Shown one piece after another: positions 7,768 to 62,229 of a stretch of DNA of 64,000 nt. The first letter of the stretch is position 1. The number at the start of each line of letters is the position of its first letter. The position numbers were made by a program, and so were the translations under genes. Under the pieces are notes generated by a model. It did no database searches and was not told the origin of the DNA. It saw only the letters and a list, made by a program, of their open reading frames with translations. Origin of the DNA: Podarcis cretensis (Eukaryota); assembly GCA_951804945.1 (NCBI GenBank), contig OX638160.1:27342001-27406000 (forward strand). Direction: 5' to 3'.

Positions 7768-8062
7768 GGAAGGCCAATAAGCTCAATTTTTGAGCATCTG
7801 GCTTGCATGCAGAAGGTCCCAAGTTCAATCCCCAGCATCGCCAGGTAGAGCTGGGAGAAATCCTGCTTGAAACCCTGGAGTGCTGCTGTCAGTCAGTGTA
7901 GACCAGGGTTTCCCAAACTTGGTTCTCCAGCTGTTTTTGGACTACAGTTCCCATCATCCCTGCTGGCAAGATGTAGTCCAGAAACAGCTGGAGACCCAAG
8001 TTTGGGAAACCCTGGTGTAGACAATACTGACCTAGATGGGTCAATGGTCTGACTCATGTTCC
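7768..8062 (+). mobile_element. Squam3-type tRNA-derived SINE interrupted by a hAT MITE
   Basis: Degenerate A box, GCATGCAGAAGGTCCCAAGTTCAATCCCC (B box), GAAACCCTGGAG..CAGTCAGTGTAGACAATACTGA..TAGATGG..GGTCTGACTC. Confidence 0.8.
7904..8014. mobile_element. hAT-Charlie-type palindromic MITE
   Basis: TIR CAGGGTTTCCCAAACTTGG / CCAAGTTTGGGAAACCCTG; perfect TSD GTGTAGAC; same family as 43861-43981. Confidence 0.92.
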
Positions 8063-9043: not shown

Positions 9044-9179
9044 CAGGCATAGGCAAACTCGGCCCTCCAGATGTTTTGGGACTACAGCTCCCATCATCCC
9101 TGACCACTGGTTCTGTTAGCTATGGATGATGGGTGTTGTAGTCCCAAAACATCTGGAGGGCCAAGTTTCCCTATGCCTG
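9044..9179. mobile_element. hAT-Charlie (MER5/URR1-like) palindromic MITE
   Basis: TIR CAGGCATAGGCAAACT / AGTTTCCCTATGCCTG; perfect TSD ATCTATCA; internal GGACTACA..CCCATCATCCC. Confidence 0.92.
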
Positions 9180-12100
9180 ATCTATCATCTATCTACCTAT
9201 AATCTCAACCCTCCTCATCATTTAGGGTGGCTAACAGTGATTAAGACCATCTATAAAATTCAATAGCATTCCAACAACAATATAATAAAAACAGGGACAA
9301 GTGCAAACGCCTGCCTAAATGGGAAGCTTTTTTTTTCCCATATAGCCAAACTGCATAAGCAAGGTGTCCAACCAAGTCTTCTGGAGCAAAGAATTTTAGG
9401 TGTGGGTACAGAGAAGGCCCTTCTCTTCTTTCCATCAACTGAGCCTAACCATTGTCAATGGGACACATAATTAAAAAAATATATATTTAATTATTTAAAC
9501 AATTTCTATCCCACCTTTCCTGACTGTGCACAAGATGGTTAATAATAAAACAAGAGATCATAAAATATAAAACCATAAACAAGAGGCCAGAGAGACAGAG
9601 ACAGAGAGGGGCAAAAGAAAGAGAATGCTTGCGGGGATGTAATAATCTTCACAAAAAGCAGTCGGGGAAGGGGCAAAGCGCAACTCTCTCTGCAAGCTTT
9701 TCTACATTCTAGGTGCCACAACTGAGAAGGCTTTCTCTCTTCCGCTTGGGTGTCTAACTTCAGATGACAAGGAAATGCAGATGATGCTTCCTAATGGAAG
9801 ACAGTCCTTGATCAAACCCTGATGTATTGCACTAAGCTGTGATAACAGAATTATGGCTGATGGCAAAGATGGTGTCTGTCTCATGTAGATGATCCCTGCA
9901 TGTACCATGGTATATGTACATAGCATTTTGCATATGCATAGTACATGGAATCATAAAAGAGAAGAAAAGTGATAAAGCAATACTGCTAAACAATCCACTT
10001 TGCACTGGAATCTAATCAACATAAACTCTTGGTTGAGCCTAGAGCAGTTCTACACTCCATTAATTACAATCATGAATTATTCTTATTCCAAAATGCTGTT
10101 CTCCTTGGATTTCCAGTGCTTCCACTTGTCCTCTGATCATGAGTCGTTTGCAACTGGACATTACTACATCCTGACAGTCCTGCAGACATACTTAGATATA
10201 AGCTGCCAAAGAACATCTCACAGCATTAATGTAATGGCACGTGAATTTGCTTGACTTGATCTTACATAATCCATTAAAATCTTCACAAATAGCATGGGCT
10301 GAATCAGACTTGCTAATAGAAATAGAGTCCTTGCTCTTGTTTCCTAGATAAATTGACTACTAATATAAACGCAGCAAGATGAGCACTCAGACCCTTTCGT
10401 GAACGCCTTGCGATTGTGAAAGTGGCACGTATCATTGAGCAATGGTGTGAATTATATATAATCCAATTGAAAGTGCTGCTTGCTTCTAAACTTTGCCTTG
10501 TAATCCTGCTCAGACTGTGACTTCTTATATTTCTTGAGGATGAAGGACCGAGGGCTGTAGTGGGTGGATAGGAAATAGGTTTACGGAAGGGAGCAAGCTA
10601 ATAGGTCATGAGCGTCAACATAAATTAAATGCTTTAGCAAGGTTTATTGTCATTAAGGTTCATGATTTTCATTAGAAAAAGATGTTCACTCAAACACATC
10701 TAAACTTCTGGAAACTTCAAATCACATAAGTGGGTCATGATTTTGCAGCGCGGGTTTCTCTCTGCTTGTTTCATTGATTCTAGGGCATAGTTATATAACG
10801 TTTTCCAGACCACACTGTTTATACATTGATAAGAGGGAAAGGGACATAATTAATAGCTTCAGAGTTCCCTCCCTCTATTTTTAATTTGAGGGAAAGGGGT
10901 TGGGAGAAACATCCTTGCCTTGCCTTGAGGTGAGAAGGCCGTGTCCTATATTTAAATGAAATCAGCCAGCTGGCAATTCATTGAACACTGACTGAGGAAG
11001 AAGAGTGTATTGAATTTTTTTATTAAAAAAAAAAAAAAACCTAACTGGAGGACATAGAAAGATGAAAGGTGAAATGCACCAGGAACAGTTAAATGAAAAT
11101 GTTGAGTGTGTGTGCAGCTGCTGTGAAAAAAGGTGAATTTCATGTTGGTGATCATTACCCTTTGACAGCGAAGGTATTTTGTTCCGTTTTCTCAGTGTTT
11201 GAAAATTCATCTAAGGGTCAAAATTAGTTCAGATGGGGAATTAGGTAGTATCTGACTGGCTCCCAGGCAAATAGGACCAGCAAAGTATGTTATGTATTTG
11301 CTGGTTGTCATTTAAACTGTTAAGAAACCTGCACTGGCTTGGAGCCATAATTTTAGAGTCCCCCCTATTCAGAAATATCACAGGCAGTTTAGCAGACCTG
11401 CTTGCAAGGGAGTCTATCACTGAAGATTTGCTTAGATTCAACACTATCCAGGGACAGTACATTATCTATTAAGCTACATCCACTCTGGATCAAACTTTTG
11501 TCTGACACAGGCAGCCAGCCTTTGCAAGTTCTTGGTTTTTTAAAGCTACCTGCAAAAGCCCCTTCCCCCTCAACAGTGTCCCTTCTTTGGGTGGTGATGT
11601 TGTGCTAATGTTGTGGTAATCTTCTGAATTCAGCTGAAATATATGTGGATGCATAGTTTCTCCTTAGTGTTCCTGCTCCTGCTGTCACTCTAGCCCTAGC
11701 CCTAGCTATCAGGAAGCAGTCCCATTTATATAAGGAAACTGCATTGCAAAATGTGGAGGAATAACAACTTTTAGAGGTTCTTGCATTGTTTTGGAAAGGG
11801 TGAAATAGGTAGGTTTGTCTTTTAATGCAAACTACATCAAATCCCTCCCCCATCCCTAGTCTGAAGGCATCTGATCTGAGGCATTGTGTTGAAGCTAAGA
11901 AAGTTTGGGTTTAGTCAAGTCTTGGACAATGGACTGTCTGGGAATCCCATCTATGCTGCCTTTGGTTGTGTGTGGGAGGAAAGGCTGGATATATATGTAC
12001 TGAAAACCAAACTTGGGAGAAAGGTGGGATATAAATATATTAAAATAAAAATACTCTTTGTTAACCACTTTAAGCTTTCTTAAAAAACAAGCAGAGTGTA

Positions 12101-13527: not shown

Positions 13528-13783
13528 CTGTATTTTTCGCTCTATAAGGCGCACCAGACCACAAGATACACCTAGTTTTTGGAGGAGGGAAACAAGAAAA
13601 AAAATATTCTGAATCTCAGAAGCCAGAACAAGAGGGATCACTGCGCAGTAAAAGCAGCGATCCCTCTTGCTGTTCTGGCTTTTGGGATAGCTGCGCAGCC
13701 TGCATTCACTCCATAAGACGCACACACATTTCCCCTTACTTTTTAGGAGGGAAAAAGTGAGTCTTATAGAGCAAAAAATACGG
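13528..13783. mobile_element. TcMar-Tc2 (MER104/Kanga-like) MITE, complete copy
   Basis: TA|CTGTATTTTTCGCTCTATAAG ... CTTATAGAGCAAAAAATACGG|TA; TA TSD; internal palindrome. Its right about 85 bp match the element end at 56836-56918. Confidence 0.9.
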
Positions 13784-26646: not shown

Positions 26647-26972
26647 GCCACCATAAATTTAAAGTCCTACCACTTTAAACACTCAAAGTTACCCGCAAAG
26701 AATTCTGGCAGCTGTTGTTTGTTAAGGGTGCTGAGAGGTGTGAGGAGACTCCAATTCCTCTCCCAGACCTGCCGTTGGCAGAGTGGTTTAACAATCAATC
26801 CTTTCTTCTCAGGGAACTCTTGAGAATTCGAGCTCTGCGAGGGAACAGAGACCTCGAGTCCTGACAACTCTCAGCGCCCTTAAAAAACTACAGCTTCCAT
26901 AATTCTTTGGGAGAAGCCATGACTGTTTAAAGTAGTATCACAGTACTTTAAATGTATGGTGTGAATGTGGCC
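26647..26972. mobile_element. PIF/Harbinger-like palindromic MITE
   Basis: GTTAAGGGTGCTGAGAG..CTCTCAGCGCCCTTAA inverted core; ends GTGTGAATGTGGCC|TAA; same family as 44703-45000 and the split copy at 56.7-57.45 kb. Confidence 0.65.
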
Positions 26973-27954
26973 TAAGTTTCCCCTTGAGCTTTACCTGTAG
27001 CATAGGCAACCCAGGAAGCCTAAAGAGTGCAGACCACTGCTGGTGAGGTGATTTGTATAATGAAATAACAGACATTCAAACAAAAACCCTCAGCCACTTC
27101 AAAAGGTGAGCGCACAACAAAAATTCCACCCTTGAAAATTTCACTGAATTTTTCACTGATTAATTTTGCATGCCGTTTTGTTTATTCGTGAGGTTCATTC
27201 ATTTAATTTCAGCAATTTATATGCCATTTAATCACTGAAGCCTGGAAGTGGTAAATATAAGAATCACAAAAATGCATATACTGGATGAAATCAGTTGCAA
27301 TTAATTATGAAAACAGAAAATTGATGGATAATGGCGGGGGTGGGGAAAATTGTTTTGACACAAAACTACACCCAGCCAAGCAAGCCCTGGAGCTGGTATG
27401 GCTAACTGGTTCCTATTCACTGCAATGTGAGGGGAAATAAGGGGGAAAGGCAAAGAGGGGAAGGAAAAGTCACGCTACGCATCTCAAGTAGGTCAGAATG
27501 GGTTTATGATGTGGTATTCCAGTGAATCTCCCTTACACACACACCACTACCACCATCACAGGATTTTTAGCAATATTAATAAATATTGCTAAAAAGGTTA
27601 CAATCTCTCTGCCTATCCATAATTACCCTACTAGTCATATACCCCTCCCCCTCCAACAGTGGGACCCTTTGCTCCTGCTTGATAGAAAATATAAGACAAA
27701 GAGTCCAGCAAAGAACCCTAAAGCCTTTATTTTTAGGCCTGTGGTTGATAAGGAGACTAAAGCAACTTAGGCGGGGAAAACAATGTCAACAGTTCACACA
27801 AAGTTTCTTTTCATGTTTAGGAAAAGCCAAGCAAGACTGAAACTATATAACTATGATGGGATTTTTTAAAAGAAGAAATGCACAATAAAGGCAGCCACAA
27901 CCTATACCTGACACATGGAAGGTCATTTCTAGGAGGTTTTAACGTATTGGAACT

Positions 27955-28011: not shown

Positions 28012-28920
28012 GCTATATTCATTCTTGCCCAAAGGCAGAGGATGGCATAGTTGCTTGGGGACTGCAATAGTAATTGCTCCTAAGAGGGAAAAGAAAACGT
28101 TCCCAATTGCCTTGAAAAGAAAGAAACATCTGAAGGACTCTTCAGGGCCATTCCAAGTTCAACTGAATGAAACCTTTAGCAAAGTGATGCTTTTATCCGA
28201 GAGTATTGCTGCAATCAACAGAAATGGACCTAGACGGAGACAAGCCAGGAGGAGAGACCGAGAGATGGCTATTGTGATGGGCATATCAGAACTGGGAGGG
28301 GAGGGGAATCAGCAAAAAACTTAAAAGAAAAGTAAAAGTAAAACACCAGGCAGTGAGTGTCTTCTCAGTTGTTCAGCATTTCTGCGCATACACTACTAGA
28401 CAACAGAGGAGAAAAGTGTAACACACCATTTATTCATTCATTCTGTGGAACTGGGCTATACTGGTTATTTTGCTACATTGTTGGCTAATGTAATTGAAGT
28501 ACACATAACAGAAACAGAAAGGGGAAATAAGACTTCTTCAGGGACCCATTAATTTCTTAAGGATAAAGTGTTTGAAGGTTCAAAGGCTTTGTTGAAGCTT
28601 ATTTTAAATTTAAAATTTTCACTGCCAGGGGATTGATTACTATTCTTGCTTTAGCTTTATCAAACAATAAGTTGATCCCTGTCCTTTCAAAATTTTATGG
28701 TACTGCTCTTAGTATATTCAGCTAATTCTTTGTTTTATTTTTTAAAGGGAGGGCTAACTTCTTATAATTATTTCAAGGACAGAATTTATTTATTTATTTA
28801 TTTATAAAATCCCTCTAAACTCTCAAGTTCTAAAAGCTGAGAAGCAATAAGGGTTCCTTCACATGGGGTAGATTCAATACATAGTATATTTGTGCATAGC
28901 TTTCCCTCTCTGGTACTAAT

Positions 28921-29483
28921 TGGACTTGGACTACTGCAACACACTCTACGTGGGGCTACCTTTGAAGGTGACCCGGAAACTGCAATTAATCCAGAATGCG
29001 GCAGCTAGACTGGTGACTGGGAGTGGCCACCGGGACCACATAACACCAGTTCTGAGAGATCTGCATTGGCTCCCAGTACGTTTCCGAGCACAATTCAAAG
29101 TGTTGGTGCTGACCTTTAAAGCCCTAAATGGCCTCGATCCTGTATACCTGAAGGAGCGTCTCCACCCCCATTGTTCAGCCCGGACACTGAGATCCAGCGC
29201 CGAAGGCCTTCTGGCGGTTCCCTCATTGCAAGAAGGAAGGTTACAGGGAACCAGACAGAGGGCCTTCTCGGTAGTGGCGCCCACCCTGTGGAACACCCAC
29301 CCTTCAGATGTGAAGGAAATAAGTAGCTATCCTATTTTTAAAAGACATCTGAAGGCAGCCCTGTTCAGGGAAGTTTTTAATATTTAACGCTGTATTGTTT
29401 TTAATACTTGATTGGGAGCCGCCCAGAGTGGCTAGGAAAACTCAGCCAGATGGGTGGGGTATAAATAATAAATTATTATTATT
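28921..29483 (+). mobile_element. L2 LINE, 5'-truncated (ORF2 C-terminus plus 3' UTR)
   Basis: ORF 28920-29387 reads LDYCNTLYVGLP...LQLIQNAAARLV...HITPVLRDLHWLPVRFRAQFKVLVLTFKALNG...RAFSVVAPTLWN, the L2-clade C-terminal signature. Uninterrupted frame; AT-rich tail. Confidence 0.95.
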
Positions 29484-37637: not shown

Positions 37638-37825
37638 GAAGGCCCTAGTTCAGTGAAAGAGCACATGCTGTGCATGTTCACCATCTAAGATTCATTCCTT
37701 GGCATCTATGGCAGAAAGGATGTCACATATTAAGGGCAGGAAATGAGGCCTTTGAGAGCAATTGCCATTCAAGGCAGCATTTGGCTGGGTGGATCTACTT
37801 GTCGAGCTGGATTGACAGTCTATAA
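37638..37825 (+). mobile_element. Old Squam3-type SINE hosting nested insertions
   Basis: GAAGGCCCTAGTTCAGTGAAAGAGCACATGCTGTGCATG..; its 3' end TATAAGGCAGCTT resumes after 38212. Confidence 0.6.
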
Positions 37826-38212
37826 CAGGTGTCCCCAAACTAAGGCCTGTGGGCCAGATAAGGCCCGAGGGACTTGTTTATCCAGCCCATGGCGACCCCC
37901 GCTGCCTGCTGCCACCACCTGCTCTTACCGGCGCTGCACTGCGCGGCTTTCCACTTTCGGGCGGGGGGGGGGAACTGGAACTAGCTTGTGCGCATGCACA
38001 AACGTTATTTGCGCATGAGCAAGCATTATTTCCTGTGCACATCCAGGTCCGAGGAGGCCCATGCACATGCACACAAGCTATTTCCAGTGCTCCTCTGACC
38101 CGGAAATAGCGTGTGTGCACGCGTATGGGCACGCGCTCCCCCGTCCTCCAGCCCGCTGTGCGATCGGCGCTGGAGACACTGGCCTGAGATGCGGTAAGTT
38201 TACTGACCCCTG
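37826..38212. mobile_element. hAT-Charlie-type non-autonomous transposon
   Basis: TIR CAGGTGTCCCCAAACT / AGTTTACTGACCCCTG; perfect TSD GTCTATAA; GC/CpG-rich palindromic interior. Confidence 0.9.
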
Positions 38213-38232
38213 GTCTATAAGGCAGCTTTGTA

Positions 38233-38599
38233 AAAAGGTAAAGGTAAAGGTACCCCTGCCCGTACGGGCCAGTCTTGACAGACTCTGGGGTTGTGCGCCC
38301 ATCTCACTTAAGAGGCCAGGGGCCAGCGCTGTCCGGAGACACTTCCGGGTCACGTGGCCAGCGTGACATCGCTGCTCTGGCGAGCCAGAGCCGCACACGG
38401 AAACGCCATTTACCTTCCCGCTGGTAAGCGGTCCCTATTTATCTACTTGCACCCGGAGGTGCTTTCGAACTGCTAGGTTGGCAGGCGCTGGGACCGAGCA
38501 GCGGGAGCGCACCCCACCGCAGGGATTCGAACCACCGACCTTTCGATCGGCAAGTCCTAGGTGCTGAGGCTTTAACCCACAGCGCCACCTGCGTCCCGG
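38233..38599 (-). mobile_element. Full-length Sauria SINE
   Basis: On the minus strand it starts GGGACGCAGGTGGCGCTGTGGGTTAAAGCC, has B box GGTTCGAATCC and ends in (ACCTTT)n. Perfect 16-bp TSD ATAAGGCAGCTTTGTA (38217-38232, 38600-38615); CpGs largely intact. Confidence 0.95.
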
Positions 38600-41500
38600 A
38601 TAAGGCAGCTTTGTACATTCATATAAATAAGTCATCAACACAGTGCCCATGAACACCACATAATCCAAAGTCACCTCTCATGGACCCACATGGCCCTTGA
38701 CCCCTATCAGTCAAGTGAAGTGTTTGCCTCCAGCAACCTATCTTCTGTAATTTCCCAGAGCTATCTTCTGTAATTTCCCAGAACTTACACCAGAGGTGAG
38801 CAGCAGAAGGCAAAAACTGGAAAAAGAAGAATCTGCAGCCACCTGGATGGAGAATGAGGAAAAGAGAGAAAGACTCCACCAGTACCTAGGAAATGGGGGA
38901 AAGCAGTGGAAAGTGAGCAATGGGTTGGTGAATGTAACCCATTCATGAACTTCACCAGTTTGCATTCTCAATTTCATCTGTGAAATGGGTATTTTGTTGT
39001 ACATTGTGAGGGCAAATATTTGGCATTAGGGGCTCAGGTCCAACCTCTGTCTTTTACTCAGTTCCTTGGGGCAAATTATTTATCCTTTATTACTAGCTAG
39101 GCTCCCACGGCAGCAGTTTTGTGATGCTGCCCACAAAACTTATCAAATTTCCAAACAAAGCTACAGGCCCCAAAGGGTTAGTATAAATATTACTAACATT
39201 ATTCTATCAATATACTAAGCAGAAATAAAGCAGACTCCTTCTGGTTTTATTTTTCTGAAGTTATATTCATATGGAGTGATATGAGGGAAATTGTTCCTTG
39301 GACTTTGATTAATTGCATTTTAATAATGTGCCTTTCCTGTCTTAACTGATGAACTTCTGGGCTAAGTAGTACAGATGCCTGCAGGAACATCCTGAGAAAA
39401 CTAGGGGACAGGTAAGTGGGGGGAGTCAGCGAGCTAGTTCTGACTCACTTCCCAAGGTATGGTTGCATTCCACCTTCTGCAAGTGGGCAAGTTATAGCAT
39501 GAGACCCTGCAGGATAAGCCAGTCTACAGAACTGAGCTCTGTAGTTGGACTTGCCTGGTAAAATATTTTTGGAGCTCTCCAACAGTTCTGTGACATAAAA
39601 GCTCACAGTACATTTCAAAGTATCTTTCCCAGATGGGTAAAATGCTAATATAACATATAACAATAAGTACTTCGGCCTGATAATTGGTACCTTGATCCTA
39701 TACAAAGGCACAAAGAAGAATACAGTCTTGCTCTTGTGAGACAAGGCTATATGACAGGGATGGGAAACCTGTGTCATTGTCACCCCATCCCCCCAATGCT
39801 CTTGGACACCTATTCCCATTAGGTAGCATGACCAATGCTCAGGGATGACGGGAGTTGGAGTCAACAACATTTGAGGGCCAATATTAGTGACACCTGTGCT
39901 AGGTGGTTGTGATTATTAGGTCCAGAGGACCCTAGGTTAACTGGAGGGCCACAAGTTAGCTGACTCTGGCCTACAGGGAGAGAGTCGGGCAGATAATAAA
40001 TGCTACTCCATTTGCTCACTAGTCATTTGCTTGCATGCTTGGAGGGAGCAGGTTAACGTGCAGCACTAGCAAAGGGAAGATGTCCAAAGGCTTGAAGTTA
40101 ATAGTGGCCCACTATTTGGCATTTGCACAGTGATGCTGGTCATGAAGCTGATCATGCCAACATTTAGCTCTAATATACCACAAGTGTTGACATTCCATGA
40201 TTATGTCATAAGAGCCCTTGATCAGTCTTGGCCTAGATTTTGAACAGCTACTTCATGATTACACATCAAATGTGTAAGACAGTTTTTCTCTTTGTTTGAT
40301 AGCTCAGTAGATTGATAGCTCAGTAGTACCCCAATGGGCCAACACTCACTCATTCATCTCAGTAACTCCTCCCAATTTGGGAGAAAGGAAGGATATAAAT
40401 ACATTTACTAATAAAAATAATTTTTCATACTGTTAAAGCTGTAACACATCACATCTTTCTCTTTCAGAACTGAAATCTCCAAAAGGTCTCTTCATATTAG
40501 CTTTGGGGTGCTTGCAACACTTTTGGGGGGCGGTATCATTTTATTAACTGCTATCCCTACCAAGTTGATATGCGTGTGTGCGCGCGCACATATAACAAAT
40601 CTACATATATGTTTTGTGTTCTTTAACATAAAGTCTTGTCTACAGGACACATACCAATTTGGAAGAATTACACATTTAATCAGGCAATGAAACACATGTT
40701 GTTTATTGAAGACTGAGGTGGGTTATGATAATTCACCACACACAGAGAGAGAAAGCACTTTGGTAACACTACTATTTCAGCCAGAAAGCCCAAAGGTGAA
40801 ATTCTAGCACTTTCATACACCCGACCATCAAGTCATCTAAGCAATTACTCAGTTAAAGGAAATGATGTGTAGATACTGTAGGTTGATAAAGTTAAAAGGT
40901 GGTTCATTAAAAAATATTTTTCTCCTCCAAGAATTAATCTGCATTTTGAAGTAACTCGAACACAAAGAACAGGAAGAAAGAAGGGACATATGGGTTTTTT
41001 TATCATATCATTTCAAGTTTGATTAAGTTACAGGAAAAAGTAAATGGCATTAGAATATAAAGGAAGCTAATCTATAAAGGAAGTGGGGGGGAAGGTTAAA
41101 GAAGTCAACAGTAATTAAATGGTGATTGAAGCTGAAAGAAAATTGATCTGTGTTAGCTGAAGGCCGTTCTTCCCTTTTGGGATGTTATGCATGGGTGAAG
41201 AGGGGAAAGAAAGGTTTCTGCTGTTTTGATATGGAAATACATGTCACATCATCTTAGCTTGTGGCACTGTGACTCAGGGCTGCCATGGATTTCTGGTACA
41301 CTGCTCCTAGTGTCCTATGCATGCTTGGGGGGCATTGTGTGAAGATGAGTTGCTTGAACAAAGACCTGTGAGGTCAAAAGTCATGGGAGCTTGGGAGCTT
41401 TGTATGCTGTTTTGTCTCAAGCGTGGGTGAAAAAGAATCACTCTAAACTAGCAGACGGGATAAGAGCAAATCTAACAGATATCTGTCTTGAAACTATGAA

Positions 41501-41645: not shown

Positions 41646-41978
41646 CAGCGGTGCCTCGCAAGACGTTCCGCGAGTCTCTTCGTCTAGCGGTTTTTTCGTC
41701 TTGCGAAGCAAGCCCATTGACGGATTAGCGGATTAGCGCTATTAGCGGTTTAGCGGCTTTTAGCAGCTTTTAGCGGCTTATCGGTTTAGCGGATAAGCGG
41801 CTTAGCGGCTTAGAAAAGGGGGGGGAGGGAAAAAACCCCGCAGGAACCCGCAAGACATTTCCGTCTTGCGAAGCAAGCCCATAGGAAATTTGTTTTGCGA
41901 AGCACCTCCAAAACGGAAAACTCTTTCGTCTAGCGAGTTTTCCATCTTGCGAGGCATTCGTCTTGCGGGGCACCACTG
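41646..41978. mobile_element. TcMar-Tigger-like MITE with internal minisatellite
   Basis: TA|CAGCGGTGCCTCGCAAGACG ... CGTCTTGCGGGGCACCACTG|TA; multiple CGTCTTGCGA subterminal repeats. Confidence 0.9.
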
Positions 41979-43059: not shown

Positions 43060-43223
43060 GTAAGTGCCTTTTGGAGACCAATTGGGATCTAAAGAACCGT
43101 TTCATTCTTGAAAGAATTATTTTCATTCACAGTGAAACACTCTTGAATTTTACAGATCATCACCAAAAGTGGGGTGGGTGAGGTTTTTTTTTTTTTTTTA
43201 AATAGTTGGTGAAAAATGCCTAA

Positions 43224-43395
43224 NNNNNNNNNNNNNNNNNNNNNNNNNNNNNNNNNNNNNNNNNNNNNNNNNNNNNNNNNNNNNNNNNNNNNNNNNNNNN
43301 NNNNNNNNNNNNNNNNNNNNNNNNNNNNNNNNNNNNNNNNNNNNNNNNNNNNNNNNNNNNNNNNNNNNNNNNNNNNNNNNNNNNNNNNNNNNNNN
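43224..43395. other. Assembly gap (N run)
   Basis: 172 N. Confidence 1.
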
Positions 43396-43860
43396 CATCC
43401 TCTCGCCACCGAGGCAGTAATCGCTCCTCTCTGCTGGGGGTTGCTTGGTACTGTGGTGGGGATATGCAAAGGCTGCTGGCATTTCCAAACATAGAAGGCC
43501 GACATTTCTTCCGACTTTGAAGTTAATAATCCTTCAGAAGTTGAAAAACTGTGGGATTTTCAAAACGCTTTTAATGTTCTATATGCCATGCGCTAAAAGT
43601 AAATATCTGCAAGTAATCACTGAAGGCTGGCACATGGAATTATTTTACAGCACCAACCACTGTAGCCTAATGTGCTCTGTGACAGAGTAAATTGTGTTTG
43701 TTTTTTCACATTGATCGTGTTTTTAGGGAAGGAGGAAGACTCCAATCACGTTGTGTAATAAAGTGCCAAGAGTACTGCGTAGGCATACAGTCTCCACCGC
43801 AGTGAGAGCAGACTTTCTTTCAAGGAAACCTCAGCATACCTCTTTTGATATATCTTAGAA

Positions 43861-43981
43861 CAGGGTTTTCCAAACTTGGGTCTCCAGCTGTTTTTGGACT
43901 ACAGTTCCCATCACCCCTGCTGGCAAGATGGTGGGAATTGTAGTCCAAAAGTTGCTGGAGACCCAAGTTTGGGAAACCCTA
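43861..43981. mobile_element. hAT-Charlie-type palindromic MITE
   Basis: TIR CAGGGTTTTCCAAACTTGGG / CCCAAGTTTGGGAAACCCTA; TSD TCTTAGAA/CCTTAGAA; same family as 7904-8014. Confidence 0.9.
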
Positions 43982-44345: not shown

Positions 44346-44702
44346 AGTCTTCTGCTTTTTCGTAAACCATATCCATGATGTGAATCTTGGGGATATGTGA
44401 TCTTCATACTGGAATTGGACAATACAGAGGTCTGTTTTGTTATCCCTTTTCAATCCAACATTTACAAGTAGGATCCTCAGCAAATTTTGAAGGAATTCTC
44501 CACGGCCAGGCAGCCATGCCCTTCCCAGGATGCACCTTTCCATTTATCTCCCTCAATGATCAGTAAGTATTTAATGCCCACTGAGCATACTCAGTCCTCA
44601 CTGTGCTGTTCTTGAGGTTTTCCCCCTTAAGTAATCTTTCTGAAATAGGTTGCACTGGAGGGAACTACTAGTATGGAAATGCCTTTGCAAGTAAGCTTAA
44701 TT

Positions 44703-45000
44703 GGGGCCCCATCTGCACTGCACATTTAAAGTGGTGTCGTGGCACTTTAAATAGTTATGGCCTCCTCCAAAGAATCCTAGGAACTATAGCTTCTTAAGGG
44801 TGCAAAGAGTTATTAGGAGCCCCTTATTCCCCTCACAGAGCTATAGCTCTCAAGAGTGGTTTAACAGTCAATCCCTCTTTCCAGGAAAACCTGGGAATTA
44901 CAGCTCTGAAAGGGGACTAGGAGTCTCCTATCAACTCTCAGCATGCTTCCCAGAATTCTTCAGCAGAGCCTTAAAATGGCCTTATAATGCAGATAGGTCC
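44703..45000. mobile_element. PIF/Harbinger-like palindromic MITE
   Basis: GGGGCCCCATCTGCAC...TGCAGATAGGTCC termini; same interior as 26647-26972. Confidence 0.7.
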
Positions 45001-45633
45001 TGAGAGAGAAGTCGCCATAGTACTGGTCAAAGACTGTGTGCGCTTCTTATTTGCAGCAAATGAGCTTCTGCACAGCACAAAGTAGTCCAAGTTAGTCCAT
45101 TGATGATCTATCTGGAGCAATAATTTCGTGGAGCAGATATTCATCAGATGTGTATAAAAAAAATGAGAACTGAATGGTAGATCTGCAAATAGCCCTAGGC
45201 AGCAGCCACACATTGGTCACAGCATGAAGAAAAATATGCAGGAAAAGTACAGTAAGGTGGTGCACCTTCTCAAGGCCTCTTTTAGCTGAGTGAAAATAAT
45301 AGCTTGTTTGATGAACATTCAAGTGAAAATTTAATTGGTCCTAGACAGTCACCCCTCCTGCCACCTAGCATGTGGGCTGTTTCTAGTTCTTAATCACTAC
45401 CCAATTGCACAGACTGAGATTAAACTAAAAAAAGAAAGAAAAAAGGTTGCACCTTTCAGATTATCTGGTTTATTGTGGCAAGACAGCTGTGTGTTTTGCC
45501 TAGAGCCGTTCAACAATGTCATCTCAGTACCCCATTTGTGGGCAGAGAAATTGGAGAAAAACATTTCAATGTACTTCTCCAAGGATCAGAGAAATTCTCC
45601 AAGTGTTTTTCAGGGGTAGTTGTCACAATTAGC

Positions 45634-52143: not shown

Positions 52144-53717
52144 TACTTAACATCTGGAGGACAGGCTACCACCAATAGCTAGTGTCCTCTATTTGGCTTG
52201 ACAGGTCACAAACAGTGAAAGCCTAAAAGGGGGTCCTTTCCATGTTTCACCTAAACTGAAGGCAAACTGTGACATCGATTACCTTCATGCAAATATTGTG
52301 CAGTCATCAGTCATCTCCAATTTGGTGATCACTGATCAATGAGCTATCCGATCCTGCTTTAGCCATTGTGATCTCTTGCCAGGATGCCCAACACATACTG
52401 CTTACAGCATAAGGGTCCTGCAAGTAACTGATAAATCCAATTAGAGGTTTATTGTATGAGTGTACCCCTTGTTGTTTAGTCCGCAAAACATAAAACTGTA
52501 GCCAGGGTACATTTGTGGGAGCTCAATCTGGTGAAATCTGGTGAGAGAACAGGAGGGTATTGTAAAGCTTACACGCCTCACCTTTTGTGTTCTTGAGTAA
52601 AGAAGTAGCACGAGGAAGATAAATGGGGGCTTTAGAGACAGGTTAACTGCATGGTATCAGGTCTGTGTGATTTTATGCTGCCATTTCCTCAGCTTGTTGG
52701 TATCAGGTTTGCTAATCGGTGATATTTAAGTATTCTCAATGAATTATAGAAAACTCTAAGAAGATATCATAATATTCACTTAGAATCATACTGCAAGATA
52801 TCCTCATCTAGGAGTTCCAAGCTTTAGTTACTAATACAATCAGAAGATCCCTAAAACTGAACTATTTATTTTACATGCTTTGGTTCAGTACTACCATGAT
52901 GTTTTAAAGTACCCATTTTAAACTTTTTTTTAATTGATCATTTCATTTTTTTGTAAACCGCTTCGAGGTTTCCTTACAATCAAGCGGTATGTAAATTTCG
53001 TTATGATTTCACTCTTACTGTCTAGGGCTTTGCAGTAGGAGTTGGGAACTTTTGGTCCTCCAGATGTTGAATTACCAATCCCTTCAGCTCCAGCAAGCAT
53101 GGCCAAAAGCCTGGGAAGAGGGGAGTTGTAGTTCAGAAACATCTGGAGGGACAAAGATTCCTGTATCTGCTTTATGGGGGTCTCATGCAGTGGTCTTTCC
53201 CATCACCTGCTCCCTGATGCTTTTAACTGCAGGTGCCAGGTACTGAAAGTGGGACTTTCTGCATCTGAAGCATGAGCTCTGCCACTGAGATATAGTGCTT
53301 ATCCAGTATATCATTGTCCTGGAAAGCAAACCTAGGCATTTACTGCATTACCTGCAACTATTTTCTTGATATTAACTCACTACTACTACTAGTACTACTA
53401 CTATTATTAGTGTTGTTGTTTTTATATAGCAGTTTAAATTTGGAAAGTGCATTTGGATCTTTATCTAATTCATCACCATGTGAGAAGGTTCTGTATTATT
53501 AACTACAAGCTGGGACTCATTAAAATTTCATGGGTGAACAGGGAAAGCTGGGAATTGACTTCAGAGGATGTGTGTTTAAACTTCCCTCAAGCTATGCAGT
53601 GTGTCACAGATGCCCTCGGAGATACCAGGCTACCAGAGTCCTTCCGCAACAAACAAACAAAGGGGGGGGGGAGATGGGCAAAGTTCAAGGCACCACATGT
53701 TTTACAACCATTCAGAA

Positions 53718-55385: not shown

Positions 55386-56835
55386 TAAGTGTGTGTTTGT
55401 GTACACACACACTCACACACAAAAATGAATGGAGAATATTTTTCTCTGTATTTCAGTCAGTTTGTATAATTGGATATGGGCAGCATGTAATTAATTTGCA
55501 ACATTTGCATACTGTCAGTACAAAAGGATATAGTTCCTTTATTTGAATTTGCTAGCAAAATATAGGATTGGCTTTAGAAGTGCAAAACTCGTGGGGGAAA
55601 ATAATCTGTTAATATTTCTGTAAATCATTTTCATGCCTTTCTTATATAATTATAAGGGGAAAGAAGGGGGGGGGCTATTCATTCCTTTAATGGAAAGGAG
55701 CCAGTCTCAAAAGCTGAATGAGCTTTTATTACTATTGTTCAGCAAAAGACAACAGATGCTGCAACTATCTTTTTTCATGCCAGACTCACAATTTAGATCC
55801 GGCAAGGGACTTCTATTGAAATTCTGGAGAGACCTCTGTTCTCAGCAGTGCTGCTGTGCTAAGATTAATATTGGAGTCCATTGGCAGGACAATTCACATT
55901 GATGCACTTGATGTGCTTTTCAAAAGCATTCGTTTTAATAAAGAAATACTTATTTTACATAGCTGAGTTAGCAAGTGGTAATTAAAGGTAATCATTCTAT
56001 TCATTTAGGGTTCCCCCCTCCTCCTTATTCTCCACAACTGAATAATAGGACTGTTGTAAGGCAGAACATTGCCACTGCCCAACATTCTTTTGATAAAGCA
56101 ACGAAGATTTAAGAAAATTCTGTGATGAAAACAAAGTTGCACTAATTCCAATCTTTCCTTTGCAGCTGTGGTCCAAATTACAGAAGTTTTCCAGATACTT
56201 AAGATTGAGTCTAATTCACAGCGGAAAAGTTTACCAGTGGCATCTGAAAAATGTGTGATTTTTCTTTCAACATGGTGATTTGTATGACTATAATTATGAT
56301 GACTGTGGTCTTTGGGCAAAATACTACCTTTATTGTTACCTGCACGTACTTGCTTGCTCTGTACACACTCTAGCAGGGCCTTTTGTTGACCAGAAATGCA
56401 GAACTGAGGAGCCTTCAACAATATTCAGAGTAGTGTTTTATACAAATGGGCTCTAGAAATTTTCCACCCAATTTCTGGGCAGAGTAACTGGAGGAACAAT
56501 TTCACTGAATTTCTTCAAGAGTGAGGGGCAGAGAAATTCTCCAAGTTTGGAGAGGATGGACTCACCATTAGCAGCTGAACTCATTTTCTCTCCTGCCCCC
56601 GCCCCCCATGTTTCAGCAGCAACAGTAACTGTGTTGGCAGTCTAGCCCACCATTTTGAATGCCCCAGACCCAACATCATTCCAGGGCACTTGGGAGGCAA
56701 GGTAGAGAGAATGGCAGATGACACCAAAAAATGTGGAGTCATTCCCTCTTTCCAAGGAACTCTGGGAATTGTAACTGTGAAGAGAATGGAGTCTCCAAAC
56801 ACCTAAAGGGTGTTATCAGCATCTTTAACAAGCTA

Positions 56836-57031
56836 CCGTATTTTTCTCTCTGTAGGACACACTTTTTCCCCTCCAAAAATGAAGGGGAAATGTGCATCCT
56901 ATGGAGTGAATGCAGGCTCCTTGGCTTCAGCAATAGCAATGGGAAGCCTCCGAAGCGCAGAGGGAGCGCTCCCTTCGCGCTCCGGAGGCTTCACGTTGCT
57001 TTCGCTGAAGCCTGGAGAGCGAGAGGGGTCG
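56836..57031. mobile_element. One end of a TcMar-Tc2 (MER104-like) element
   Basis: TA|CCGTATTTTTCTCTCTGTAGGACACACTTTTTCCCCTCCAAAAATGAAGGGGAAATGTG..TATGGAGTGAATGCAGGCT matches the reverse complement of about 13700-13783. 90-bp internal palindrome at 56923-57012; no second TIR. Confidence 0.88.
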
Positions 57032-57400
57032 GCTGTAGGTGAGGATGTCCTGTGGCTCGACGGCTTTGGGCACGGCCCACAGCCCTCGGTAGGTGCACAG
57101 GACGTGTTGCTGCTGGCAGTCGCATGGCTCCGGGCACACAGGCTGCGCGGCGGGAGGCAGCAGAGCCAAGGAGCAGCAGAGGAGGAGGAGCGATATCAGA
57201 TGGCGGGGGCACGGCAGCTCCATCCTGCGAGGGCGGGCGGTGAGTGGCAGCTTCCCCCGATCCCTCGGCGTCTCTCCGGCATCCCACCCTCTCCTCTCTC
57301 CTGCTTTCTCTCTCTTGCGCGGTGGCTGCCGGTCAGGCTCCTCCTCTGTCGTTGGGGGCGCGCCTCTCAAACCCGCTGCCGAGGAGGGGATGGGAAGACC
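57032..57400 (-). pseudogene. TRIL: Captured 5' fragment of TLR4 interactor with leucine-rich repeats (upstream/5' UTR sequence plus 64 codons)
   Basis: ATG at 57223 (GCAGGATGG Kozak) gives MELPCPRHLISLLLLCCSLALLPPAAQPVCPEPCDCQQQHVLCTYRGLWAVPKAVEPQDILTYS. This matches the recalled TRIL N-terminus (human ..LALPPLAEPVCPERCDCQHPQHLLCTNRGLRVVPK...DVLTYSLGGNF). Similarity stops exactly at LTYS, where transposon sequence begins. Confidence 0.85.
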
Positions 57401-57487
57401 CTTAAAGTGGTATGATACTGATTTACATGTATAGTGCAGATGGGGCCTAAGTAAGTGCATGGAAGTGGATAGAGTCATGCACTAGAG

Positions 57488-57627
57488 CAGGCATAGGCAA
57501 ACTCGGCCCTCCAGCTGTTTTTAGACTACAACTCCCATCATCCCTAGCTAACAGGACCAGTGGTCAGGGATGATTGGAATTGTAGTCTCAAAAAACTGGG
57601 GGGGGGGGCCGAGTTTGCCTATGCCTG
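57488..57627. mobile_element. hAT-Charlie palindromic MITE
   Basis: TIR CAGGCATAGGCAAACTCGGCCC / GGGCCGAGTTTGCCTATGCCTG; TSD CACTAGAG/CACTACAG; family of 9044. Confidence 0.92.
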
Positions 57628-59607
57628 CACTACAGGAGAGGTGGGGGAACCTATTGCTCTCTAGGTGTTGCTGTACTCCAACTCTAAGCATGACCCAACT
57701 ACTGGCCCAGCTGGATGGTACTTGATGGGAACTGGAGTCCAACAGCATCTGCTTTAGGGGATACTTTCCCTGACATTTAGAGTTATATTTGAAATATGGT
57801 GCGGGTGTGAGACCTGTCTAAATATACCCAGTTGGGCATTGCTGTTCGAAAATGTATTCACACAAGCTGTGAAAAAAGAACTGTTCAGACATGCCAGAGG
57901 AAACTCCCCAGTGCTGTTAACAGTTCTATAGAATAAATTCAAGTTGCTACGTTGGAGGAAGCTTATGAAGCCTTTCAAGATGAGCCCGTCTTTTGCATCA
58001 ACTCGCCAGTCAGTTCCTTTCATTATCATTCAAACCCAGAAGGATCATTAGCTGAACACTTACTGGTTCACCTTCACCCTATGAGATACCACTGAATGCT
58101 ATAAAGAGACAGATAGGGAACAGCTTCTTGAAACTATATCCTTTATTGTCTTTAAGTCAAGGAAGACTCTTGAAAAGAAAAGATTTTTCTGGGATTATCT
58201 TGGGAAGCTATATTTTAAAAAGAAGAAGAAGAAGCACACCTTACAGTCTCAGACATGTCGAGCGAGTCTCCAGCTAAGCTATTTTTCATTACATATTAGC
58301 AAACCAATGAAATATGTTCAAGGGAGATCACTCGCATTTCTTATCCATCTAAAAGAAGGTGTCACTTAAGTAAAAAAAAAAGATTCTGGAAAGTGTGTAG
58401 GGCTTATTCCTTCCTGCATTATGTTAGTAAAAATGAATATTCAAGTCAGATTTTCTTTTCAAAAATTAACATTAAAAAATGGATGGAGTAAACATTTGAT
58501 CACACTAACCAAAACTTACCATCTGAAGCTATACAGTCTGGAAACAGGTCTGCCATTTCTTTTATTGTTTGTGAGAGCTATGCTGTTGTCTTTTATCTTC
58601 CATAACTAGGGGCTAGTTTTCCTTTGTGTTCCCCCTGAAAAGAAAAAAAAGATGTTTATTTTGCTAGAATTGACCTAGAATAATGTAGGTGAAAGTGGGG
58701 GACGGAATCCTGCCCAGTACAGAATATTGCAGAAGGGAGAATTCTGTCATAAGTAAATTCAATCCCTACAGCTATAGCAGAAAGAAGGGATACACAATGT
58801 GTTGCCCTCCAGATGCTTTTTTTACTACAACTCCCATCATCCCTGGCCATCAGTCATGCTTGCTGGGGCTGATGGAAGCTGGATTCCAGCAACATCTGGA
58901 GGGTGCCCTGTTGGCTACATTTTCCCCAAAATAACTCCAATCAATGTAACCCTTTATAATTATAATAAAAAATCATACTTATGATTTGCCAAAGAAGTTG
59001 GAAGAATCCCACACCAATTTCAAATAAATATAGTTCTATTGTTCAGATCTAGCTTCTGACAGATAATAGCTCCTTTCCCCAACCTCAAAGTAGGAAGGGC
59101 AAAGTATTCAACCCTCTACTTTGTGCAAATTAGAATAGTTTCAATGAATTTATGAAGATAACTAAACTGCATCAACTAAAGATAACACCCAACCACTTTG
59201 ACTATAATTGCCCCTTCCTCCTTTTTTTAAAAAAGGTACCATAGAAAGAATTCTACAAAAAACCTCAAGATTCTCTGTGAACCTTTTAATTGATGATTAC
59301 AGCTACTGTTTAGCCTAATGTGACCATGGACTAGTGGGCTCTACCAGATGGAAAGTAAACCCAACTGTTAAAAGATCTGTACCAGGTGACAAATTACCTT
59401 AGGGAGAAAGAGCTTTTGTGTTCAATAATTCACCATAGGAAATGTGGAAAATATTTCATTTTTTCAGGTGCCTGCCCTGTTCAGTCTATTCTTCACAGTG
59501 GATATTACAATCCATTCTTAGCGATTTGAGCTCATCTTATGGAATGTGATTTCATTAAACCATTTGCTAGCAGAGATGGACTAATATCTCCATGACTTCA
59601 GAATCTT

Positions 59608-59650: not shown

Positions 59651-62093
59651 TTACTTCCCTTCTCCAAAAACCCATGTGCAATGTTTTACTGATCTTTCAT
59701 AACCAATAACATAGAAACACTACACATAACGCCCCCTTACCAAAATAATAATAATAAAAATAATTATTGCAAATGCCCTCCCAATGGGACTTAACTCCAG
59801 GATACAGGGTAGCAGTCTAAAACTATCCAAACCACTGCATATACATGGGAATGCTATTAATGTATACTTAATACATTAGGGGCAGAGCAAATTAGGATTT
59901 TGAAATGTTATTTTTTTATACTGAAGGTCAGATTAGAACTGACATGGCATTAAGAGGCAAAAAAGATCGGTGAATAATCATTTGCCCTGACAACTCTCAT
60001 CTTCCAACCCTTCAATTAATGAATAGGAGCACTACCTTAAGCAAGTTTACACAGAAGCAAATCCCACTAAATGAAAAACAATTTACTCTCCTGTAGGTTT
60101 GCATTGGATTGTAGCCTGTGCAATCTTATACATGTCTACTCATAAGAAAGTCCCACTGACTTAAATGAGGCTTATTCCGGGGAAACGGGTATCCGACTGC
60201 AACCTAAGAGTCATCTCAATGCATTTACTTTGTGTTTAATTGAATAAGGTTATGATCATAAGCATAAATCACATGCTAAGGCAGCTCAGCCATTTCAGAA
60301 ATTCCTTGTGTGAGTTCACAGCATATTCAGTAGTAAAAAGTGCTCTCTGCACCCCTGCCAGTACATCTTTGTGATCCCTGGTGGTCTGCACTACAAGAGT
60401 TCACCTGACCCGGTTTAGCCAACGACAGTACATATGATCACAGTTGGAGATGGTATGAAAAGGGTATGGAACAAGCTGTGAGTGGTGCTCCTCAATTAGA
60501 GTGCCTTGAAGGTCAAACACTTCAAAAAAAAAAATATGTTCCCCTTGTGTCTACAAAAGAGTAGGGCATGCACTCTAGATCTATTATCACCAAGAAGCCA
60601 GGGCTGTTTTTTTCCCTAAATAAAAAAACCTATCACAATCCAATGAACTATGCTGTTGCATACATTGTTTTTGTGTGCTGCTGAAGGAATTTTGTATGCT
60701 CTGTTGCATGCATAGAGAATATCTATCCTGCAAGAGCTTTGTGCGCTAGAGATGGTTGCCATAACTACTACCATAGAAAGATGCATTGACAAATTCAGCC
60801 CTACAGTGTCTGTGGCTGGCACATTACCTTGTTGAATTATTCAATTAAATGTGATAATGAGAGCTCATTGACATCATTAAATACGCAGGTGAATAAAGAA
60901 TTCACTTTGAAGTACACTATTATCTGAAGCCAATTGTGAGTGAACAAGCAATACTTCTCACTACAGGGTACAGGTTTCGGAAAAGGAAACTGCATATGCC
61001 TACAAAAAAAGAGGGAGGAGTGCTTATGAGGTTGCATTTGCTGCCATCAATTAAGAATATATCGGGTTTTAATTAGATTCTCTCTGTTTACTAAGCTTTA
61101 GTTATTGTCCATTTTGAAGAAATAGGAGAAACAACAGGAAATACTCTTGACAAGGTGCAAAAGCAAATCACATCTGCTATCAACTACTTGATTGCTATGT
61201 CTGGAAATATTCTATGGCAGCCTTCACCAACCTGGGGCCCTCCAGATGTTTTGGACTACAACTCCCATTATCCCTGATAATTAACCATGGTGGGTATGGC
61301 TGATAGGAACTGTAGTCCAAAACATTTGTACTCCCAGTTGGTGAAGACTGTTCTGTCCTAGCAAAGAGAACCTGGAACAGTTTGCCTTTGGGCTCTGAAT
61401 GATGTTTCACCCTTCTACATCCATGAGCAATAATGCTTCAGAACTTGTGCTCACTCTTAGATATAGACAGAGATTTGGTAGAGAAGTTAATCATGTCAAT
61501 GCAGACAATGCTGAGCTAGATGGACTGATAGTCTATTATCAGGCAGCTTCTGGTGCTCCTGCTACCTGTTTTTTTTAACTGAAGATGTCAGTGTGATTGA
61601 ACCTGGGATCACTGGCTCCATCTCCAGGAGACCCAGGCATCCACAATTATTTTGCTGTGGGTGCCCAGCCTCTGCCCCTGCCACGGAATTGATTTGCACC
61701 ATAGGGCAATCCTAAAACCCAGTTATCAACCCTGAAGGAATCAACCCAGCAAACAGGCTGGATGATTCAGGACATGCACCCAATGCCTATGCCAAAACCT
61801 ACTGATATCTGTCATCAACAAAGTTGTGGCCGTTAGATCCCATGCTATTTGTTTTGTTATTATTTCTCATTGACACACCCTATCTCCCAATGGCCTGGGC
61901 TCACTGCACCTGGTCCTGCAAAAATTCACACCAAAATGCTGATTAAATTTCACCAATACTTTAAAATATATATATAAACTAATAAGGAAACATGGATAAC
62001 TTAAGAGAGGGAAAATGAGATAAGCTGACGGAATCACCCATCCCTAACTTCAACACAGGCCACAGAACCACAGAGCAGCAGGACAGCTTAGAG

Positions 62094-62229
62094 CAGGCAT
62101 GGCCAAACTTGGCCCTCCAGATGTTTTGAGACTACAACTCCCATCATCCCTAGCTAACAGGACCAGTGGTCAGGGGTGATAGGAATTGTAGTCCCCAAAC
62201 ATCTGGAGGGCCAAGCTTGGCCATGCCTG
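62094..62229. mobile_element. hAT-Charlie palindromic MITE
   Basis: TIR CAGGCATGGCCAAACTTGGCCCTCCAGATGTTT / AAACATCTGGAGGGCCAAGCTTGGCCATGCCTG; perfect TSD GCTTAGAG. Confidence 0.93.

Follow-up and report, generated by a model that had tools for sequence, protein, structure and literature searches.

We found that a piece of the TRIL gene, consisting of part of its 5' upstream/UTR sequence, the start codon, the signal peptide and the LRRNT cap, lies outside its native locus in Podarcis cretensis, where it is joined to a truncated Tc1/mariner-type MITE within an older repeat. The window analysed is a single stretch of 64,000 nucleotides (contig OX638160.1, positions 27,342,001 to 27,406,000), and all coordinates given here are positions within it. 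We favour, with rather better than even confidence, an origin in which the TRIL piece filled a gap where a resident MITE had broken, independently of transposition. The features on which the analysis rests are the following.

56737 to 56835, plus strand: left part of the host repeat, an older palindromic MITE-like repeat
56834 to 56835: TA dinucleotide adjoining the transposon end, corresponding to the MITE target site and read directly
56836 to 57032, plus strand: truncated Tc1/mariner-type MITE with one TIR, a terminal region and a central hairpin
56836 to 56861: TIR of the truncated MITE, the only match to the TIR at the insert
56917 to 57017: central palindrome of the truncated MITE, an inverted repeat with 49-nt arms that are 86% complementary
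56927 to 57223, minus strand: chimeric open frame of 98 codons, 64 from TRIL and 34 from the MITE, followed by a stop
57032 to 57223, minus strand: TRIL coding fragment, with the ATG at 57223, the signal peptide and the LRRNT cap, 64 codons to ..DILTYS
57224 to 57400, minus strand: GC-rich upstream sequence of 177 nt, with TRIL 5' homology at least to about 57352
57400 to 57452, plus strand: right part of the host repeat, from the same older repeat copy as the left part
13528 to 13783, plus strand: intact MITE of the same family, used as the reference; 256 bp, with TA on both sides, 26-nt TIRs and a central palindrome

A TRIL 5' fragment joined to a truncated MITE

The sequence-only reading, made before this analysis from the letters alone, had described a minus-strand ATG followed by 64 codons for a signal peptide and LRRNT cap, and had assigned the peptide to the N-terminus of TRIL. 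The frame is present as described, from the ATG at 57223 to 57032. We searched its 64 residues with phmmer against 1.84e9 (1.84 billion) representative proteins. The top nine matches were all TRIL (E 1e-14 to 4e-9, 65-80% identity), and other LRR proteins scored at least 15 bits below them. NCBI/UniRef gives the name TRIL to those of the top matches that were looked up, although UniRef calls one of them just an 'LRRNT domain-containing protein'. A follow-up protein search returned 288 TRIL-like proteins, squamate TRILs among them; the cluster of Podarcis muralis XP_028606036.2 includes P. raffonei, P. lilfordi, Lacerta agilis and Zootoca vivipara. Identity between the fragment and residues 1-65 of P. 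muralis TRIL was 88-89%, with 57 of the 65 positions identical. The phmmer matches and this identity to a lacertid TRIL confirmed the assignment. At the level of the domain, the Pfam LRRNT model matched the fragment with an E of 7e-5 and 22.8 bits, below its gathering score of 25.8, and a PDB sequence search yielded generic LRRNT only (biglycan, LRRC4 and LGR4; E at least 4e-4), which does not discriminate between families.

The homology ends sharply. When four full-length squamate TRILs were used as tblastn queries, it stopped at 57032 each time, and no TRIL sequence beyond residues 1-65 was detected in the 64 kb, all other HSPs having E > 0.1. The 64-kb window also contains no long LRR ORF. 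LGGNFI comes next after YS in 124/124 TRIL proteins; here the sequence instead runs into the MITE, which bears out the break after ..LTYS that had been proposed. Missing from the fragment are the LRR array, the LRRCT, the C-terminal domain, the transmembrane helix and the cytoplasmic tail of a protein of about 760 residues. P. muralis TRIL (XP_028606036.2) has the homologous signal peptide and LRRNT cap; it also has everything after residue 65 and the invariant residues of the cap, whereas the fragment lacks the former and carries replacements in the latter. Judged from these alignments, the peptide is the N-terminus of TRIL, and what the window holds is a fragment, not a gene.

An intron in TRIL after LTYS was considered and rejected, as the minus strand has no GT donor at the junction and the window no downstream TRIL exon; the in-frame continuation into LGGNF in all TRILs also counters it. 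Read on the plus strand, the junction is CTGTAG/GTGAGG (window 57020-57045, with the MITE/TRIL border at the slash). This is a good match to the splice-donor consensus, and a cryptic donor is possible if the window is an intron of a plus-strand gene.

The TRIL codons continue into the MITE as the 98-codon chimeric frame, which is probably fortuitous. Selection on the chimeric peptide is unlikely because invariant LRRNT residues have been replaced. A comparison of a 183-aa frame with proteins, seeking the chimeric ORF or orthologous copies in other assemblies, gave no significant match among 444 candidates.

We then considered the sequence upstream of the ATG, which had been described as about 180 bp of GC-rich DNA. 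A Hemicordylus capensis TRIL model aligned in one frame with 57352-57032 (tblastn, E 9e-29), its N-terminal extension reading through the upstream region, about 500 nt 5' of the ATG. The description stands in that 177 nt are present, with TRIL homology at least to about 57352, covering about 130 nt upstream of the ATG; the final stretch of about 48 nt (57353-57400) lies beyond the alignment. The total non-TE insert measures 368 bp (57033-57400). Just 5' of the ATG, the minus strand (..CCGCCCGCCCTCGCAG, then G ATG) resembles a splice acceptor, so that one may ask whether TRIL has an intron in its 5' UTR.

On its other side the fragment is fused to the truncated MITE, which starts with CCGTATTTTT immediately after the TA at 56834-56835. 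The first 83 nt of this element (56836-56918) align with 13697-13783 in reverse complement (82% identity over 87 nt, E 5e-19), in agreement with the claim that a TA-flanked transposon end homologous to the intact MITE at 13528-13783 is present. Its TIR is unlike those of the intact copy at 5-6 of the 26 positions, and the two TIRs of the intact copy differ from each other at 4 positions. No ORF was found in the 256-bp intact element. The family thus has the marks of Tc1/mariner-type MITEs (TIRs, no transposase, non-autonomous), the truncated element having its TIR in common with the intact copy.

The intact MITE has TA on both sides, whereas the truncated element has it at its left end only, and no matching TA was found at the far end of the insert. 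We scanned the entire window with the reverse-complement TIR, allowing up to 7 mismatches in 26, and found no second TIR in the 64 kb except that of the intact MITE at 13758-13783. The central palindrome (56917-57017) gave a DNA fold of -42.5 kcal/mol (z -6.3), and none of 200 shuffles was as stable. The MITE/TRIL junction at 57032/57033 sits 15 nt beyond the base of this hairpin and is internal to the element. By comparison with the layout of the intact copy, the element appears to lack its other terminal region, some 85 nt that contain the second TIR. This 'half' MITE is a truncated member of the intact family of which about two thirds remain, namely one terminal region plus the whole central hairpin.

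Decay and base composition of the fragment

Next, we compared the fragment with the TRIL of related species. The N-terminus of TRIL is identical in three Podarcis species, with Lacerta and Zootoca 1-3 residues off. Relative to the Podarcis N-terminus, the fragment carries 7 replacements and lacks one Gln codon. A near-identical match to an intact TRIL had been expected from the sequence-only reading, and at the protein level these changes contradict it, two of them falling at invariant residues. N45Y and R49W lie in columns that are invariant in 124/124 TRILs, and the invariant Asn and Arg of the cap (CTNRGLR) are Y and W in the fragment. Four of the 7 replacements imply CpG transitions, with CTG from CCG, TGC from CGC, CAT from CGT and TGG from CGG. 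This pattern points to an old copy that has probably undergone neutral decay after duplication, probably driven by methylation. A divergence of about 5% and an age of the order of tens of millions of years are rough values, inferred from the replacement count and not measured.

The replacements and CpG transitions therefore argue against a chimeric misassembly of the real TRIL and indicate a separate locus. Reads from the CpG island at the 5' end of the real gene might have been misjoined into this repeat-rich region, since GC-rich 5' ends and repeats are both difficult to assemble. We nevertheless regard such an artefact as highly improbable. The 7 replacements and the codon deletion separate the fragment from five lacertid TRILs and include residues invariant across all 124 proteins; moreover, beyond the insert the sequence returns to the older repeat copy that precedes it, which would not be expected from a mis-join.

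Base counts for the insert (57033-57400) gave a GC content of 0.68 and a CpG observed/expected ratio of 0.67, and the GC-rich sequence 5' of the TRIL ATG (57224-57400) a ratio of 0.72. The wider interval 56940-57400 (461 bp, GC 0.675, observed/expected 0.73) qualifies as a CpG island, defined by a length of at least 200 bp, a GC content of at least 0.5 and an observed/expected ratio of at least 0.6. The background ratio was 0.19 and 0.13 in the two 5-kb flanks and 0.21 in the entire 64-kb window. A CpG-rich island in otherwise CpG-poor DNA, as originally noticed, is what these values describe (0.67-0.73 versus 0.13-0.21 around it). Young SINE/MITE copies at 37800-38600 are equally CpG-rich, and so is a tandem repeat at 41721-41813. 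Because the young repeats at 37820-38600 are equally dense, CpG richness alone is no marker of host-gene DNA in the window. The CpG richness that the TRIL fragment has retained could reflect either a moderate age or protection from methylation.

The region 37820-38600 consists of two adjoining young, CpG-rich repeats with the same CpG density as the TRIL island: a young, CpG-rich MITE-like element at 37820-38210, and a tRNA-derived SINE-like element at 38230-38600 that starts with GGTAAAGGTAAAGGTACCCCTGCCCG and is bounded by the direct repeat ATAAGGCAGCTTTGTA. The CpG-rich tandem repeat at 41721-41813 is built from 8/16-nt units (CGGCTTAGCGGTTTAG) in about 5.5-11 copies, and has the highest local CpG observed/expected ratio of the window, 1.27.

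Position and proposed origin of the fragment

The DNA on the two sides of the insert belongs to one repeat. On the left, 56737-56804 aligned with 44866-44936 (76%, E 2e-7); on the right, 57402-57452 aligned with 26927-26977 (76%) and 44750-44705 (78%), with an E of 4e-5 each. When joined, the flanks are colinear with three copies (26770-26985, 44845-45005 and the reverse complement of 44690-44770), and they leave about 25 nt of the host repeat or less unaccounted for when compared with the copy at 26770. From its flanks, the piece is an insertion in an older repeat and not the native TRIL locus, because these flanks are colinear parts of one repeat copy and because the 64 kb contain no other TRIL sequence. 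In its own place, a gene would not be expected to have its promoter and initial codons enclosed by a single, divided repeat copy. Both the non-native position and the single older repeat forming the flanks had been put forward earlier, and both survived this comparison. In human, TRIL is located at 7p14.3 (PMC4080317).

The old repeat copies are too diverged for the right-hand junction to be placed at the nucleotide level. A 30-bp target duplication appeared in a first multiple alignment and was rejected, as the similarity of the flanks at that place is only about 65% and the host repeat is palindromic in its own right; the colinear reading fits better. The host repeat is a large inverted-repeat element, and its copies at 26649-26990 and 44680-45010 each match both themselves and the other in both orientations.

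One could suppose that transposon insertion together with deletion destroyed the native TRIL locus, or a once-complete paralogue, where it stood, the start codon and a still CpG-rich upstream region being what was left. We find this scarcely credible. An intact TRIL of 762 residues exists in lacertids, a single repeat copy forms both flanks, and no other TRIL residue could be detected by tblastn in the 57 kb downstream or the 6.6 kb upstream.

Our model of gap filling at a MITE break suggests the following course. A Tc1/mariner-type MITE would first have inserted at a TA inside the older repeat. That the MITE was resident first is most likely because its TIR terminus adjoins TA within this repeat, the signature of Tc1/mariner-type integration. 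Later, a double-strand break would have occurred at or in the MITE, caused either by a transposase cut at its right end or by breakage at the strong central hairpin; both sources are possible because the right junction cannot be placed to the nucleotide. Repair synthesis, starting at the left end of the element, would then have passed through the hairpin and switched template to the TRIL locus, where about 370 nt may have been copied, beginning at codon 64 and proceeding in the upstream direction. Finally, the new strand would have been joined to the right-hand flank, with loss of the right terminal region of the MITE (about 85 nt) and of the second TA. The expected position of the right end of the MITE and of its second TA coincides with the second junction or is no further than about 25 nt from it. 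From then on, CpG transitions and other changes would have accumulated as in neutral DNA. The anatomy itself, the match to TRIL, the position outside the native locus and the decay are observed; the order of these events, the use of a DNA rather than an RNA template and the type of break we infer.

Comparable events have been described in a survey of 100 animal genomes, in which 370 Pack-TIRs were found (Tan et al. 2021, Nat Commun 12:4280, PMC8277862). In animals, most single-copy duplicates associated with TIR elements originate without transposition, by gap filling in which the template is switched (PMC8277862). This gap filling is guided by microhomology, and its breakpoints are skewed towards internal fragile sites (PMC8277862).

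The filler could also have been derived from RNA, as a partial cDNA of the TRIL mRNA 5' end, generated by LINE reverse transcriptase or template switching and captured at the MITE break. Breaks are known to be repaired at times by the capture of cDNA. All of the piece, upstream part and CDS alike, looks like transcribed sequence, and its homology to the TRIL transcript model of another squamate extends at least 130 nt 5' of the ATG. However, this Hemicordylus model reaches about 500 nt 5' of the ATG, and the limit of the fragment need not correspond to the transcription start. Target-primed retrocopies, furthermore, keep the 3' end and poly(A), whereas here the 5' end alone is present, with no A-run. 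As nothing positive points to RNA, we consider this source unlikely. The TRIL coding sequence is a single exon; thus, the absence of introns cannot separate a DNA from an RNA template.

A processed retrocopy would carry the mRNA 3' end, a poly(A) tract and a target-site duplication of 5-20 bp. We found no A-run at either junction, no flanking direct repeats and no mRNA 3' end. An ordinary LINE retrocopy had already been judged unlikely, and we concur: only the 5' end is present, poly(A) is absent, and the end is a transposon terminus adjoining TA.

Relation to Pack-TIRs and significance

The locus had been interpreted as capture of a gene fragment by a transposon, in the manner of a Pack-TIR. 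By definition, the captured sequence of a Pack-TIR lies between two TIRs that belong to one element, each covering at least 10 bp of the termini, and has a unique parental copy elsewhere that is not itself next to a TE (PMC8277862). With 368 bp of internal non-TE sequence, the insert falls within the size range of the class (100-5000 bp), but the window contains no second TIR for it, and the interpretation as capture by a transposon is not supported in that form. Having only one TIR, the fragment therefore cannot transpose as it stands. In our analysis it would work like a gap-filling Pack-TIR, yet it stands outside the class and appears immobile in its present form.

The resemblance to single-copy Pack-TIRs (PMC8277862) is nevertheless close. 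In both, a host-gene fragment of 100-5000 bp abuts a TIR transposon at a breakpoint inside the element, away from the terminus and beside a likely fragile site. The TRIL piece is, like them, fragmentary and probably single-copy, and it forms a chimeric open frame. Unlike them, it has transposon sequence on one side only, the second TIR and TA being missing. The Pack-TIR set was restricted to at least 90% nucleotide identity to the parent (PMC8277862), whereas the 88-89% of the TRIL piece is a protein-level value.

Two other known systems invite comparison. The Pack-MULEs and Pack-CACTA elements of plants also involve the duplication of a GC-rich gene 5' end in association with a DNA transposon. 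In contrast to the TRIL piece, which is not mobile as it stands, they have two TIRs with TSDs and are often multicopy and mobile. Abortive gap repair (P element, Ac/Ds, Tc1/mariner) leaves, as here, an element with an internal deletion that extends to its end and has ectopic filler at the junction. Such repair takes place at excision sites; for the TRIL piece, the mechanism is one suggested by the anatomy.

A true mobile Pack-TIR might have formed elsewhere between two TIRs, transposed into a TA and later lost its right TIR. The TIR terminus flanked by TA agrees with such a history, and multicopy Pack-TIRs favour GC-rich sequence and soon lose the TE on one side (PMC8277862). Against this, there is neither a second TIR nor a second TA, and an extra deletion would be needed that ended by chance near the boundary with the host repeat. 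Most animal cases are, in addition, single-copy and transposition-independent (PMC8277862), and no further copy was found in the 64-kb window. Taken together, we hold this history to be quite improbable.

If gap filling at the MITE break is correct, the locus offers a clean squamate case in which the break of a small DNA transposon pasted the 5' end of a gene into a new place. Displaced 5' ends of this kind provide material from which new first exons or promoters can arise. Events of this class have been documented before, in a survey of 100 animal genomes (PMC8277862) whose main text does not contain the word 'lizard'. As the copy seems to be decaying neutrally and is immobile, the value of the locus would be that of an illustrative case and of a phylogenetic marker within Lacertidae. 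It introduces no new mechanism, and the biology of TRIL and the TLRs is unchanged.

A more consequential outcome would be that the TRIL 5' end has been kept as a working unit, either as an orphan intronic CpG-island promoter or as a secreted peptide of 98 residues, or that it is a member of a multicopy mobile Pack-TIR family in lacertids. We think it very unlikely that either applies. The 98-residue peptide, if expressed, would consist of the TRIL signal peptide and LRRNT cap followed by a transposon-derived tail. Were the fragment a working unit, its high CpG content would mean protection from methylation and not youth; were it part of a mobile multicopy family, that family would be the first described in squamates to carry a piece of an innate-immunity gene.

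Other features of the window were also recorded. A family of palindromic MITEs of about 145 bp, with the core ACTACAACTCCCATCATCCC, is represented at 57483-57632, 62089-62229 and 9044-9184 by copies that are mutually 86% identical, and by partial copies at 58800-58900, 61230-61330, 53045-53175, 7914-8004 and 43871-43918. The window includes 303 N, with a run of N at about 43200-43480 inside an ORF at 43089-43505. On the plus strand, 28920-29387 holds an open frame of 155 residues (..LDYCNTLYVGLPLKVTRKLQLIQNAAARLVTG..), which may resemble a conserved segment near the C-terminus of an ORF from a vertebrate retroelement.
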